This document shows positions 1-13,697 of a stretch of DNA of 64,000 bases, piece by piece. Source of the DNA: Octopus sinensis (lineage: Eukaryota); the NCBI RefSeq assembly GCF_006345805.1, contig NC_043023.1:20956001-21020000 (forward strand), written 5' to 3'. The notes beneath the pieces are model-generated. The model had not been told where the DNA came from. It worked only from the letters and a program-made list of their open reading frames with translations, and searched no databases. Made by a program: the position numbers and the translations under genes. Position 1 is the first letter of the stretch, and the number at the start of each line of letters is the position of its first letter.

Positions 1-1147
1 AAAAACTTCTCGGCTGCCTCTCCAGCCAGGTCACTGAACGATTCGTCGATGCCACCCGACTGCCCCTCGTATATCAAGCCCGAATGTTCCTCCGTGAAGC
101 AGTGGGTTATTTCGTGTGCAATGATATCAAGACTTACTAGCGGCCGATACTCCTTGTCGCCGTCACCGAACGAGAAGTTTCTTCCGTTGTAAAAAGCATT
201 CACTATGTTTTGGCCAAAGTGTACGCGGAGGGCCATTGGCAGCTTTTTCACCGGGGGTATCTTCACCCATTCTTTGTACATATTGTAGACGACATTGCCA
301 TAGAAAATAGCATCGTTTATCGGAGAATAAGCTCCGTTCACTTCATCCTTCGCAGTAGTGTTGCATTTTAAATTATAAATACTTTCTGCTTCATTAGGCA
401 GGAACTCCTCCCCCTTTAGATTCACCACTGTGACGAACTCGTTGCCGAAATAACAATCATCGCCCTCACGTGTCACTTCCAAATATGGTAGTTCTTCTCC
501 GTATCTCAATTTACCTATCAAATTGTTACCCCCGACACCTTTCATTTTGTATTTGTTTTTTGCGGTTTCCAGTGTGTTCCATTTTTTAACAAGCATTCCA
601 TTATTCGCATCGATTAGCATGCAAAATCGATAATTTTTTCCATTAGATACGGCATAATATTGAATTCGATAAACCAAGATGGCTACGTTGTCCTTCACGA
701 AGATCATCAACTGGAGTTTATCGTAGTCTATGCGGGCCCCTTCCATCGAAAATTTTCCGTAGTTGGCAGCTAATAGCATCACTTCCGGCTCGTTCAAAGC
801 TGGTACTGTAGAGTTGATGTCATCGTCAAGGTTCTGAGCCAGTCTTCCGGTCACCTGACCAGTGTACACATCGGTATTGGCGTCCGTCTCCACAGTGAGG
901 CTGGCATCGAATACCGGAAGCCCTCTATAAGTCTCCCCGTACTTTTTGATGATGGTTCCTTGCTCACTCGGTGCCGAGTCCATCAGCGTGACGTCCTCGT
1001 CTTCGGTCAGACCGAATAGGTCACGTGTGGTGATCATGTGACTTGGTTGTCGCTTCATTGTCTCGCTCAAGGTATCCACATTGGACAGGAACACATTCCT
1101 GGCCTGTCGCCATTTTGCTGACGTCACAACGTGGCTCTCCAGGAACG
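1..1147 (-). CDS. Exon 2 (3'-partial) of a secreted M4-family (thermolysin/pseudolysin/vibriolysin-like) zinc metalloprotease preproenzyme
   Basis: Manual translation gives 381 stop-free codons (1145 to 3): FLESHVVTSAKWRQ...KKYGETYRGLPVFDASLTV (FTP-like)...IDANNGMLVKKWNTL (PepSY-like)...GVGGNNLIGKLRYG (mature N-terminus; cf. pseudolysin GPGGNQKIGKYTYG)...EVNGAYSPINDAIFYG...NAFYNGRNFSFGDG...LDIIAHEITHCFTEEHSGLIYEGQSGGIDESFSDLAGEAAEKF. HExxH is at 116-102. Acceptor tttctAG at 1149-1148 is phase 1. Confidence 0.95.
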
Positions 1148-1155
1148 CTAGAAAG

Positions 1156-1686
1156 ATAATAATAATAATGATAATAATAATAAAAATAATAATAATAATA
1201 ATGATAATAATAATAATGATGATGATAATAATAATAATAATGATAATAATAATGATGATGATAATAATAATAATAATAATGATAATAATAATGATAATAA
1301 TAATAATAAAAATAATAATAACCATAATAATAATAATAATAATAATAATAACCATAATAATAATAATAACGATAATAATAATAATAATAATAATAATAAT
1401 AATAATAACGATAATAATAATAATAACAATAATAATAATAATAATAATAATAAGATAATAATAACAATAATAATAGGCGATAATAATAATAAGAATAATA
1501 ATAATAATAATAATAATAATAATAATAATAATAACGATAATAATAATAATATAAAATAATAATAATAATAATAATAATATAAAGATAATAATAATAATAA
1601 TAATAATAATATAATAATAATGATAATAATAATAAAATATAATAATAATAATAAATAATAATAATAATAATAATAATAATAAAATA
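1156..1686. repeat. (AAT)n microsatellite
   Basis: Direct reading. Source of the poly-I/Y/L ORFs. Confidence 0.97.
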
Positions 1687-1689
1687 AAA

Positions 1690-4134
1690 TTACTAACTTC
1701 TGGCTGAATGCCTTCCCAGAGAGCCATGAACTGCTAACAGAACTGTACAATGATGTTTTGCAACACCCTAGTAGGATGCCTCCTTGGCTAGTTAATGGGT
1801 TAACATTCCTGCTTCCAAAAAGTGAAGAAACAAATGAACCAAAAAACTATAGACCCATAACCTGCTTAACAACTATGTACAAAACACTAACATCTGTCCT
1901 GACGGAATATACCGATAGTTTTTTAACAGACAGCAGCATATTACCTAATGAACAGAAAGGATGTAAACGTGGATCCTACGGCTGTAAAGACCAACTACTC
2001 ATCAATAAGATGATCTTAGAAGATTGTCACAAACGACACAAAAACTTATCAATAGCCTGGATAAACTATAAAAAGGCTTTTGATAGCCTACCACATAGCT
2101 GGATTAGGAAATGCCTGGAAATGTATAAGATAGCACCTACTCTGCGAAACTTCTTGACTGTAAGTATGAGATCATGGAGAACCACACTAACTCTGAACAG
2201 TGACAATGAATCCCTAAATGCTGGTGATGTAAAAATTTCGTGTGGCATTTTCCAGGGTGACTCACTGTCACCACTCCTCTTTTGTTTATCCTTAATACCT
2301 CTCTCAAAGCTGCTCAATGACGCGCAGTACGGGTATAAAATGTTTGATAAAAATATAAATCATCTCATTTACATGGATGATTTAAAGCTTTTTGCAAAAA
2401 ATGACCAACAACTCAAGGGCTTACTAGCGATAGTCAAACAATTCAGTGACGACATCAGAATGCAATTCGGCCTCGATAAATGTGCAAAGGCTACCTTTAT
2501 CAAAGGAAAAATGACAGTAACATCTAACGTTAACCTTGACCAGCAGAATGTCATAAAAGAACTAGACCCAGCGGAGAGCTACAAGTACCTAGGGGTAATT
2601 GAAGGGAACGGAATAAGGCATTCAGAGATGAAGGAAAGGATCAGGAGAGAATGCTATCGAAGAGTGAGAGCAATACTCAAGACAGAGCTGAATGCAAGAA
2701 ACAGGATCGAAGCGATCAATGCATTAGCCATACCAGTCGTGACTTAAGTTTCAATATTGTTAACTGGTCAATTACTGAAATATGTCAGCTCGACAGAAAA
2801 ATAAGGAAACTGATGACAATGCATAGAATGCACCACCCTAAGGCAGATACAGAACGACTCTATCTGCCAAGAAAAGAGGGAGGCCGTGGTCTTTTGCAAC
2901 TGGCAATAACAATGAAGATTGCTACCTGAAAAACTCTGAGGACTGGATGTTAAAACTTGTCTCAAAACATGAAAACAAGAAAGCATCATACTCAGTCACA
3001 AAACAGGCAAAGGAATATCTAAGTGAATTCCGAATACAACCAATTTCGGAATTAGAGATAGATATACAAGAAACAAGCACAGAAAAAGCTAGGCGCATGA
3101 AAACCCGTGCCAAAACTGCGGCCTTAGATATTCTGAATAATAAATGGCAAGAAAAACCTCTCTATGGCAAATACCCAAAGAGAGCGAATAATGCAGATAT
3201 CGACAAAGCCCTGACCCATCAATGGCTAATGGCCTCTGGCTTAAAATCTGAAACAGAGGGGTTTATCATAGCAGCTCAAGATCAATGCCTACCATCAAGA
3301 AACTACCAGGCCAACATATTAAAGAACGGCACTAGCCCAACATGTCGTGTATGCTGACAACAAAATGAAACCATTGACCAGGTTGTCTCCAAATGCAGTC
3401 TTCTAGCGCCTACAGAGTACCTCAGTAGGCATGATAGAGCTGCACAATATATTCACTGGGTAATTTGCAAAAATCTGGATTTGCCCCATGAAAAAAACTG
3501 GTGGGAACACAATCCACATCCTGTGCTTGAAAATGACCACATCTCACTCCTCTGGAACTTCACCATTCAAACTGACAGGAAGATAGATGTAAATAGGCCA
3601 GACATTATATTGAAAGACTTCAGACAAAGAACATGCCTCCTCATTGATATGACTGTCCCAATCGATATAAACGTATCTGTCAGGACCTACCAAAAACTGA
3701 GCAAATATAAAGATCTTGAAATAGAAATCAGCAAAATGTGGAAGCTGAAGACTAAAACAATACCTGTTGTCATAGGTGCCCTGGGAATGATAGCGAAAGG
3801 GACTGATAGCTACCTAACTCAGATACCAGGAAACCCCAAAATGGCAGAAATTCAAAAGATAGTGCTCATGGGAACTGCTCATATCCTACGCAAAATACTC
3901 TCTATGTAACCCCAAAGTTTAAAACAAACTTTTTTTTTATTATGATTTTTTTTAATTATTTTTTTTTAAATTTTATTTTTTATTTTTATGTATTAGACAT
4001 TCACTAGTACAACACCAAAAAAAGAAAAAAAACCCCAAATATATGGCACAGAACTTCCAACCTGTTGTCTCTTGAGGTCTCTGGGTGAGGCTTGGAGCCA
4101 ACTTGTACAGACATAAAGCAAAAGTCAAACATAG
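1690..4134 (+). mobile_element. 5'-truncated, decayed R4/Dong-like RLE non-LTR retrotransposon
   Basis: RT motifs NYRPITCL, QKG, YKKAFDS, GIFQGDSLSPLLF, YMDDLKL (1758-2747). C-terminal CRVC knuckle and RLE nuclease RPDIILKD...LIDMTVP...KLSKYKDL (3481-3909). Several stops. (AAT)n on both sides. Confidence 0.92.
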
Positions 4135-12388: not shown

Positions 12389-12431
12389 TACAAACACAGA
12401 TGCAAACCTAGAAAATGCGTGTTTTACTCAC

Positions 12432-12480
12432 CGAGTAATAAAAGAAAAAGGAAAGGAATCCCAGCGATACAGGCAGCCAT
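12432..12480 (-). CDS. Exon 1 (signal peptide) of the M4 metalloprotease gene
   Basis: ATG at 12480-12478 reads MAACIAGIPFLFLLLL + G, then donor GTGAGT (12431-12426). The phase-1 donor matches the phase-1 acceptor at 1148 and joins to give MAACIAGIPFLFLLLLAFLESHVVTSAKW, a continuous hydrophobic signal peptide. Confidence 0.85.
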
Positions 12481-12647
12481 TATCTTTCTCTCCCTCTCTG
12501 TCACACTGGTCAGTCAGAAGTGGAAAACAGCAGCAATTGGTCAAGTACAGCCACTACGGAGATGAAATAGTGGACTTTCAAACTGGAGACAGCTATAATA
12601 GTAACCGTAGACAAACATCCGAGGCAGCCGAATTTTTAGGTGGTGAA

Positions 12648-12657
12648 CCTTATATGC
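12648..12657 (-). promoter_or_regulatory. Candidate TATA-like box of the M4 gene
   Basis: Minus strand reads GCATATAAGG about 170 nt upstream of the ATG, in non-repetitive sequence with a G-rich tract just upstream. Position and motif only. Confidence 0.4.
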
Positions 12658-13697
12658 AGTTGGCGGTGGGGCAGGGCCACACAATGAGGCCTTTCAGTCT
12701 GTTAGGGAGAGAAAGAGCTACTAGAGATGACACTCTTGCTGTGAGAGTGAGAGTGGACACTCACACTCGTGTTGTGAGACCCTTGATCAAAGTGTGTGCT
12801 TGATACGAGTGGAGCGGTTTACTGATGGACGAAAACAAACGACGGTATCGCTCTCTGCCTGTCCCAACTCGCCTTCTCTACCGCATACTTCCTCCCACCC
12901 CCCGCTCCCTACTTCCATCTACGCTGTCTGTGTGTCGTCGGGCAATCATCTCGTTTCGCCTCGTTAATTAAGTATCATTTAAAATTAGGCAAACATTTTC
13001 TTCACAAGCAAACTATTCATCCCATGTTCTAGAACACGCACCACACACATACCCACACACACACCACACCCAAACACACAAACACACACACACACACACA
13101 AACATACACACACACACACACACACAAACACACACACACACACACACACACACAACCTACACACACACACACACACAAACATACACACACGCACAGAAAC
13201 AAAACACGCGCACACCACACATGCAAGTATGTATATAATCATGCACGCTGCATAGTATATATATATATATATATATATGTGTATGTGTGTGTGTGTGTGT
13301 GTGTATGTATATATATATATATATATACATGTATGTATGTATGTATATGTTATAATTATATATATAATTATGATAAAGGCTTGGCTCGCACCTCTCCAGG
13401 CACTGAAAAATTATGTATATAATTATGAAATATTTGTAAAATTTACCTATTAGGTTTTTACCCTGTATTACATATATAAATATATATATATATTAGAAAA
13501 AATGAGGTAATCAGAAGATCGGATGGTTTATATTTACAGATAATTATTTATATATATTTTTTACATATATATCTTATCACTTAGATCATTAGCGCTTTCT
13601 CCCATTCTAGTGTGTTTTTTCAAATCAATATATCTATATATATATATATAATATATATATATAATATATATATATATATATATATATATATATATAT

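Follow-up and report, generated by a model that had tools for sequence, protein, structure and literature searches.

An intact octopus gene for a secreted M4 protease of the pseudolysin/vibriolysin subgroup, probably descended from an ancient bacterial capture

In textbooks, M4 proteases figure as bacterial enzymes and virulence factors. Here we describe a gene for a protease of this family in Octopus sinensis, located on the minus strand at the left end of a 64,000-nt stretch of DNA (the window; contig C27:20956001-21020000, part of a 21-Mb scaffold of a 2.72-Gb assembly), and we consider it probable that the gene is nuclear and functional, encodes a secreted zinc endopeptidase and descends from a single, very old bacterial capture. 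Among the described systems, vibriolysin MCP-02 of Pseudoalteromonas (PDB 3NQX/3NQZ) and related marine vibriolysins have in common with the octopus protein the HEXXH...E zinc site, the Tyr/His pair, the first disulfide and the C-terminal PPC domain. In Foldseek comparisons, the modeled catalytic domain of the octopus protein is 40% identical to MCP-02 and matches it with a template-modeling (TM) score of 0.89 and a root-mean-square deviation of 1.2 Å, while its propeptide matches the MCP-02 propeptide chain (3nqz_A) with a TM score of 0.80. In contrast to MCP-02, the octopus gene is part of an animal chromosome and has an 11.3-kb intron ahead of its main exon, and its eukaryotic-style signal peptide is spread over two exons. 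The protein also has extra cysteines (C366; C422/C455; C574/C580 in octopods) and a PPC domain that has diverged beyond Pfam detection.

Pseudolysin, the elastase of Pseudomonas, provides the best match among solved structures: when all PDB sequences were compared, its proenzyme (PDB 8CR4/1EZM) ranked first with an expectation value (E) of 5.5e-84 across propeptide and catalytic domain, and the TM score of the catalytic domains is 0.88-0.91. However, pseudolysin lacks the PPC domain and is a bacterial virulence factor, and nothing suggests that the octopus enzyme acts in a similar way. Legionella ProA (NF045902) was the only strong NCBIfam match (E = 9e-89), but the score of 298 bits against a cut-off of 900 means that the octopus protein is not an equivalog. 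The thermolysin/bacillolysin group has family, fold and catalytic machinery in common with the octopus protein, but is much more distant (E = 3.7e-27 in the same PDB comparison, 28% identity, TM score 0.76) and serves as outgroup in our tree. Outside the family, a likeness exists to centipede venom families (PMC7864903), in which a bacterial-type secreted protein likewise sits in an animal genome with eukaryotic gene structure; the octopus protein belongs to another family, its transfer would be far older, and venom use is not implied. According to PMC7851659, the M4 family itself is nearly restricted to bacteria.

Public annotation already contains the gene and its relatives as automatic models with borrowed bacterial names, as an earlier sequence-only reading of this DNA had cautioned. 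Homologues are named in Octopus, Haliotis, Ostrea, Liolophura and others under RefSeq/GenBank labels such as 'elastase' (O. sinensis, O. bimaculoides), 'elastase-like' (Haliotis), 'M4 family metallopeptidase', 'neutral protease-like' (Liolophura) and 'virulence metalloprotease-like' (Ostrea, Gigantopelta), all of them unreviewed and carried over from bacterial proteins. In the literature, we found no paper on the mollusc M4 family, its origin, transfer or function, and no expression or proteomic report on an octopus M4 protease in glands.

The elements of the gene are as follows (window coordinates).

12481..12660, minus strand: putative 5' untranslated region and core promoter with a TATAAG box at 12654-12649, assigned from sequence only
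12432..12480, minus strand: coding exon 1, comprising ATG, 16 codons and 1 nt (MAACIAGIPFLFLLLL plus the G of Ala17), from sequence reading and the translated join
1148..12431, minus strand: phase-1 GT-AG intron of 11,284 nt, almost wholly repeats, with donor GTGAGT and acceptor (ATT)n-CTTTCTAG
1116..1147, minus strand: start of exon 2, comprising the last 2 nt of codon 17 and FLESHVVTSA, the c-region of the signal peptide, from sequence
552..1115, minus strand: propeptide of the FTP and PepSY type, precursor residues ~28-215, opening with a conserved KW/RR motif, from Pfam, alignment and model
1..551, minus strand: N-terminal two thirds of the mature catalytic domain, from about residue 216, from Pfam, PDB and Foldseek

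A scripted join of the two coding exons (49 and 1850 nt) yields an uninterrupted coding sequence for 632 amino acids followed by TGA. Within the window, the minus-strand frame from 1147 down to 3 is free of stops over 381 codons and contains the complete set of motifs that the sequence-only reading had listed, i.e. GVGGN, NGAYSPINDA, HEITH (116-102) and GGIDESFSD (56-30). Upstream of 1147, this frame stays open only by virtue of an (ATA)n microsatellite. The C-terminus, which had been sought in the left flank, was indeed found there: exon 2 continues for 702 nt past the window edge (flanking locus L001), adding 234 codons with zero stops or frameshifts. This part encodes the remainder of the helical domain, His444 and the PPC domain, and ends with the TGA at C27:20955298-20955300. 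The gene is therefore complete and intact. It is not a chance open reading frame (ORF), because exon 2 spans 616 codons within AT-rich repeat DNA, M4 matches reach E = 0, and the ratio of nonsynonymous to synonymous substitution rates (dN/dS) against its paralogues, the A-type genes introduced below, is 0.15-0.19.

The splice junction proposed by the same reading is supported by comparison. Exon 1 opens with the ATG at 12480-12478 and provides the n- and h-regions of the signal peptide; its last letters, ...CTCG, reach 12432, after which the intron opens with GTGAGT at 12431 (donor 12432/12431). At the acceptor (1148/1147), TTTCTAG, read as ...ATTATCTTTCTAG, is followed by CG. Donor and acceptor are both in phase 1 and the join restores GCG (Ala17). 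Cleavage of the signal peptide (residues 1-27) is predicted after TSA at residue 27, placed by the -3/-1 rule rather than by a dedicated prediction tool. A public protein of 633 amino acids (P0003), whose model comes from an assembly very close to this one, differs by 4 substitutions (99% identity) and has the identical exon junction; its N-terminus (MAACIAGIPFLFLLLLAFLESH...) opens with MAACIAGIPFLFLLLLAFLESHVVTSAKW, which is the exact 12432/1147 join. Exon 1 is also kept upstream of paralogues, as BLAST-level matches 5.1 kb upstream of exon 2 on contig C10 (97% identical) and 6.2 kb upstream of exon 2 on C30 (72% identical), and other octopod gene models open with the same 16-residue layout, MA[AT]C.... 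The TATA-like element that had been noted upstream of exon 1 is represented by the TATAAG box, 174 nt upstream of the ATG. The putative promoter region is 97% conserved in the C10 copy, but this duplication is so recent that the similarity is uninformative. Two Logan contigs (L019, L016) were considered as spliced transcripts; both are genomic, with the acceptor visible.

Analysis of the protein supported the earlier assignment to the pseudolysin/vibriolysin subgroup with a full prepro layout. In Pfam searches, the part encoded in the window matched Peptidase_M4 (1e-22), the start of Peptidase_M4_C and, weakly, FTP. The full protein matched Peptidase_M4 (PF01447, 2e-22) and Peptidase_M4_C (PF02868, 1.3e-25), both above the curated cut-offs, so that the N-terminal beta-rich lobe (PF01447) and the C-terminal helical lobe (PF02868) of the M4 fold are both present. 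Across the family, FTP was detected in 11/11 members (best E = 1.8e-7) and PepSY in 9/11, and the propeptide region aligns with the propeptide of pro-elastase. For the C-terminal domain, an hhalign comparison of the mollusc sequences with the PPC region of bacterial homologues gave 98.9% probability (E = 1.7e-17), and the last 113 residues matched a PPC/collagen-binding domain (5sv5) in Foldseek with a TM score of 0.71. The AlphaFold model, computed from a 40-row alignment, has a mean predicted local distance difference test score of 85.5 and a predicted TM score of 0.89. Its sole disordered loop, residues 202-218 in exon-2 numbering, is of low confidence and lies at the expected junction of propeptide and mature enzyme, where it likely marks the processing site. 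Overall, the TM scores to the pseudolysin/vibriolysin group are 0.87-0.91 at 38-41% identity. The octopus protein is thus, as judged from sequence and model, predicted to be a secreted M4 peptidase with the complete architecture of a bacterial secreted protease, and it is placed in the pseudolysin/vibriolysin subgroup because of the far better match to pseudolysin than to thermolysin (5.5e-84 vs 3.7e-27), the higher TM scores and the separation of the pseudolysin-like ingroup from thermolysin-like paralogues in the tree (100/99, see below).

The active site is intact. HEITH corresponds to precursor residues 361-365 and Glu385 sits in GGIDESFSD, in line with the M4 pattern of HEXXH and, some 20 residues further downstream, a Glu within GxxxE(A/S)FSD as third zinc ligand. 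The zinc ligands His361, His365 and Glu385, the general base Glu362 as well as Tyr376 and His444, the latter encoded beyond the window, are invariant in 40/40 mollusc and bacterial rows. Tyr376 and His444 correspond to the transition-state residues Tyr155/His223 of pseudolysin and Tyr157/His231 of thermolysin. Cys248 and Cys278 are invariant in all aligned rows; Cys491 is near-invariant and its partner Cys519 is kept in all mollusc rows. We take these to be the counterparts of the pseudolysin disulfides Cys30-Cys58 and Cys270-Cys297, the pairing in the octopus protein being assigned from the alignment. Further cysteines have a narrower distribution: Cys366 (window 101-99), which directly follows the second zinc-binding His (HEITHC), occurs in 10/12 rows of subfamily A (defined below), the C422/C455 pair in all subfamily-A rows and a few bacteria, and the C574/C580 pair of the PPC domain in octopods only.

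Homologues were collected in two profile searches, in cluster look-ups and in an exhaustive comparison with 1.84 billion representatives, and the statements on taxa rest on the top-scoring matches listed. Every named eukaryote among these matches is a mollusc. Represented are cephalopods (three species of Octopus, Argonauta), gastropods (five species of Haliotis, Patella, Pomacea, Gigantopelta), bivalves (Ostrea, Pinctada, Mya, Tegillarca, Ylistrum) and a chiton (Liolophura). No named eukaryote other than a mollusc was among the best matches listed of three profile searches. The best bacterial relatives come from Xanthomonadales/Lysobacterales, Pseudoalteromonas, Aeromonas, Vibrio, Burkholderiales and Corallococcus and are 30-38% identical over the whole protein. 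About 17,000 representatives of 50%-identity clusters match the profile, and the few of them identified beyond molluscs are proteobacterial, myxobacterial or metagenomic.

A maximum-likelihood tree was calculated from 102 rows under LG+C20, with four thermolysin-like paralogues from one Corallococcus genome as outgroup; support is given as ultrafast bootstrap/SH-aLRT (Shimodaira-Hasegawa-like approximate likelihood ratio test). Within the pseudolysin-like ingroup (100/99), 42 proteobacterial and myxobacterial rows form one side. The other, eukaryotic-like side (98/87) is a ladder of three JGI transcripts, P0236, P0224 together with P0232, a clade of ten eukaryote-like sequences, and the molluscs. 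The ten-sequence clade is sister (97/90) to all 40 mollusc rows, which are monophyletic (96/91) and fall into two subfamilies. Subfamily A (100/100) unites the A-type genes of cephalopods with genes of scallop, oyster and pearl oyster, while subfamily B comprises chiton, gastropod and bivalve genes and the remaining octopus genes. As A and B each hold cephalopod and bivalve genes, the A/B duplication therefore predates the split of cephalopods and bivalves. One sequence, P0204, had been taken for a mollusc gene by rank alone. This was rejected, since the tree puts it outside the molluscs; it stems from a 2.3-kb JGI contig that resembles a transcript in its A-rich start context and in having ATTAAA close to the 3' end.

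The loci of the sister group, found in ENA assemblies, are AT-rich (GC 35-40%), gene-poor and carry tandem M4 copies. Interspersed repeats are shared between ERZ24900295 and ERZ25069853 and between ERZ25767047 and ERZ25069853 (up to 97% over 236 bp), and none with ERZ26052378. The sister-group contigs thus look eukaryotic, and the hosts of the three repeat-sharing assemblies look related to one another. No repeats common to the sister-group loci and the octopus genome were found, and an Rfam scan of these loci gave no match. The sequences involved constitute a third, greatly expanded M4 lineage (loci L032, L033, L034, L129, L130; P0387-P0401), with at least 6 copies on a 1.19-Mb contig and several on a 1.36-Mb contig. 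A profile search recovered no member of this lineage from any NCBI-annotated genome.

To check the intron, the sequence that precedes the conserved propeptide motif [KRYNV][WRK] (examples are AKWRQAR, AYRVDAH and ARRINVE) was read in A-type copies (L001, L002, L003, L019, L016, L013, L014), B-type copies (L006, L008, L009, L010) and sister-group copies (L032 with two copies, L033, L034, L130). In 16/16 eukaryotic copies, a polypyrimidine tract and AG were present 23, 26, 29 or 32 nt before the motif. This spacing is always 2 mod 3 and the acceptor is therefore in phase 1. In several copies the upstream frame is closed by stops and offers no ATG, and therefore an upstream exon is required. Moreover, the NCBI model of the copy on contig C3 (P0344) uses exactly the conserved junction. 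The arrangement of a signal-peptide exon, a phase-1 intron and one giant exon is therefore ancestral to the whole eukaryotic clade, and from the shared position and phase we argue for a single domestication event. Exon 1 may either be a 'host' signal peptide that was captured or have arisen when an intron was inserted into the original signal peptide. A recent add-on in octopus or cephalopods, the scenario implied by the sequence-only reading, is not compatible with an intron position and phase common to all copies inspected.

The metagenomic protein P0015, whose N-terminus (MLVSVQHIPFLFSF...) has 'IPFLF' in common with exon 1, was considered as an intronless relative that would imply intron gain in cephalopods. 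This was ruled out, as the stretch is a translated polypyrimidine tract that ends with TAG at the exact position of the conserved acceptor. Metagenome-called proteins (P0014, P0015 and others) therefore have N-termini that arose artificially by read-through of the intron. At loci L013, L014, L032 and L033, prokaryotic gene calling runs the M4 ORFs through the polypyrimidine tract or starts them at GTG, and the resulting false hydrophobic 'signal peptides', e.g. MLVSVQHIPFLFSFCLSVIA, are present in public protein collections.

Six-frame searches of the octopus genome revealed at least 9 intact M4 copies and one pseudogene, which answers the earlier question about paralogues. The gene on C27 is one of four A-type copies; two more are located on C30 and are 73-74% identical to the C27 protein. 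B-type genes, 32-39% identical to the C27 protein, form a same-strand tandem cluster on C11 (C11:71,405,000-71,497,000; loci L006-L009, L024, L026, L028, L031), with four or five genes within ~95 kb, and occur once more on C11 at 31.4 Mb and once on C3. One copy of the C11 cluster carries an in-frame TAG. Orthologues and paralogues are distributed across four octopod genomes. Among the A-type paralogues, dN/dS is 0.15-0.19 at dS values of 0.9-1.4, which indicates that the A-type gene is, by sequence comparison, under purifying selection. Together with the intact active site, this supports a function in the host. Among the young tandem copies on C11, dN/dS is 0.44-0.88, which suggests relaxed or diversifying selection. 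At C10:4,183,999-4,191,100 (loci L004, L005, L021) lies a recent duplicate of the whole C27 gene including promoter and exon 1, with a 5.1-kb intron. It is 90-97% identical to the C27 gene (97% in exon 1), and its large exon is broken by at least 3 frameshifts and one TAG, reflecting a pseudogene or assembly errors.

Considering all this evidence, a transfer from a bacterium to an animal at or before the mollusc ancestor is the best reading. It is based on the full bacterial architecture, the single-exon gene body, the restriction of named eukaryotic homologues to molluscs and the place in the pseudolysin-like group. Domain architecture and taxonomic distribution both speak strongly for bacterial ancestry, though they point to no particular donor lineage. 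Thus, of the horizontal acquisition proposed earlier, the bacterial ancestry is supported, while its recent or octopus-specific character does not, the family being pan-molluscan and bacterial relatives reaching 30-38% identity at best. Several observations weigh against this interpretation. The eukaryotic clade is sister to the 42 sampled bacterial rows and nested neither among them nor in a named bacterial lineage, and therefore the case for a bacterial origin rests mainly on architecture and distribution; the tree that had been called for thus gave molluscs as one clade in the pseudolysin-like ingroup, but not inside the bacteria. Its bootstrap had not fully converged. The sister sequences (ERZ25069853, ERZ24900295, ERZ25767047, ERZ26052378; JGI 3300019038) come without a host taxon, so that the age of the transfer and the recipient lineage are not fixed. 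As the searches return top-scoring matches, M4 genes of other animal phyla could be overlooked. In the octopus protein itself, FTP remains below the Pfam threshold (E = 0.0076) and PepSY and PPC are undetected by Pfam, so that the assignment of FTP, PepSY and PPC draws on family-wide matches, profile comparison and predicted structure. Finally, splicing, expression and secretion are predicted from conservation and the public gene model.

The first of these observations would also fit vertical inheritance from an M4 gene of an early eukaryote or early animal that was kept in molluscs and a few further lineages and lost nearly everywhere else, and so would the deep-branching relatives that carry the same intron on eukaryote-like contigs. 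We regard such a history as unlikely, given that the three profile searches listed no named non-mollusc eukaryote among their best matches, that the complete architecture of a bacterial secreted protease including the PPC domain is kept, and that a single exon carries the coding sequence although genes in these genomes usually have many introns. The description of M4 as almost exclusively bacterial (PMC7851659) and the proteobacterial, myxobacterial or metagenomic nature of the few representatives identified beyond molluscs, among ~17,000 matching ones, speak against it as well.

That the ORF is not an expressed host gene but a bacterial contaminant or a dead relic is very improbable, even though the close C10 copy is a pseudogene. 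The M4 gene, with its GT-AG intron, is integrated in a 21-Mb scaffold amid octopus microsatellites, SINE-like arrays (SINE, short interspersed element) and retrotransposons, its GC content is host-like, and paralogues reside on four other chromosome-scale contigs. This host context is genuine octopus repeat DNA, and contamination is excluded. A relic is at odds with the relatives in four octopod genomes, the low dN/dS, the intact catalytic residues and the conservation of splice sites and exon 1. Hardly credible is, lastly, a recent transfer into octopus or cephalopods from a gammaproteobacterial relative of Vibrio or Pseudomonas with quick addition of intron and host signal peptide, for although the motifs and best solved structures belong to the gammaproteobacterial pseudolysin/vibriolysin group and the coding region is nearly intronless, it is contradicted by the low whole-protein identity to bacteria, by homologues in chiton, gastropods, bivalves and cephalopods that form one clade with two old subfamilies, by the intron position and phase common to both subfamilies and the sister group, and by dS values that already reach 0.9-1.4 between octopus A-type paralogues.

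The surroundings of the gene consist of the following further features.

1156-1687: (ATA)n microsatellite, inside the intron
1683..3909, plus strand, antisense to the M4 gene: fragment of a non-long-terminal-repeat (non-LTR) retrotransposon, from ORFs, with an RVT_1 match (E = 1e-26) for 1683-2747
4135-4607: (AAT)n microsatellite, inside the intron
6802-7628: tandem array with a 184-bp unit, inside the intron
9002-9719: tandem array with a 180-bp unit, inside the intron
11735-12369: tandem array with a 127-bp unit, inside the intron
27332-28081, 62121-64000 and 53891-54959, plus strand: retrotransposon fragments, with endonuclease/exonuclease/phosphatase domains (1.3e-11, 8e-12) and a zinc-finger ORF1-like piece

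The units within the three intron arrays are 93-97% identical to each other. The first and third arrays contain a motif, GGGGTCGAT...AAGTAC, that is repeated throughout the window in either orientation and probably represents an octopus SINE. The retrotransposon fragment at 1683-3909 adjoins the 530-bp (ATA)n tract that abuts the splice acceptor. From 13 to 64 kb, the window contains only microsatellites, SINE-like arrays, non-LTR retrotransposon fragments and one assembly gap, visible as a run of N near 48.4-48.5 kb; no second host gene was seen in this interval.

How the octopus enzyme would be made can be proposed by analogy with pseudolysin and vibriolysin MCP-02. The signal peptide (residues 1-27) would direct the precursor co-translationally into the secretory pathway, where the FTP/PepSY propeptide would act as folding aid and inhibitor until it is removed autocatalytically near residue 215. 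The mature enzyme would then cleave substrates on the amino side of hydrophobic residues in a zinc-dependent manner, and the C-terminal PPC beta-sandwich may help in substrate binding or be trimmed off. Its proposed role would be extracellular proteolysis, for example in a digestive or salivary secretion. As to the origin of the gene, we propose that a bacterial M4 gene was captured once and very early, that the upstream exon and the phase-1 intron inside the signal peptide were gained soon thereafter, and that duplication into two subfamilies preceded the divergence of the mollusc classes. The octopus lineage would now be left with its at least 9 intact copies, among them the A-type gene on C27.

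A bolder version of this history is possible, and we offer it as tentative. Accordingly worded, every eukaryotic pseudolysin-like M4 gene, i.e. the two pan-molluscan subfamilies as well as the sister lineages on eukaryote-like contigs and in marine transcripts, would go back to one Precambrian capture of a vibriolysin-type gene, with exon and intron gained once and kept for >500 million years, and with an expansion in octopods to ~10 copies including a fast-evolving tandem cluster. If this were true, the pattern of the octopod expansion would fit recruitment into saliva, venom or digestive juice. Likewise, sister-group hosts that turned out to be non-mollusc animals would place the transfer before Mollusca.

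The enzyme is a eukaryotic addition to a well-known family; the part worth attention is the evolutionary picture, with a pan-molluscan distribution, two old subfamilies, a shared intron and an expansion in octopus, which is moderately rather than highly surprising. For annotation it means that mollusc genes labeled 'elastase' or 'virulence metalloprotease-like' are host genes and not contamination, and that prokaryotic gene callers applied to host-associated metagenomes give false N-termini to such genes. The octopus copies may account for as yet unexplained metalloprotease activity in the digestive, salivary or hatching secretions of cephalopods. For the family, it appears that molluscs have retained and multiplied an entire vibriolysin-type gene, down to its PPC domain, from a time before their classes separated. 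This would be a clean, datable case of a bacterial secreted hydrolase turned permanent animal gene, in which the shared intron serves as a built-in marker of a single domestication event.

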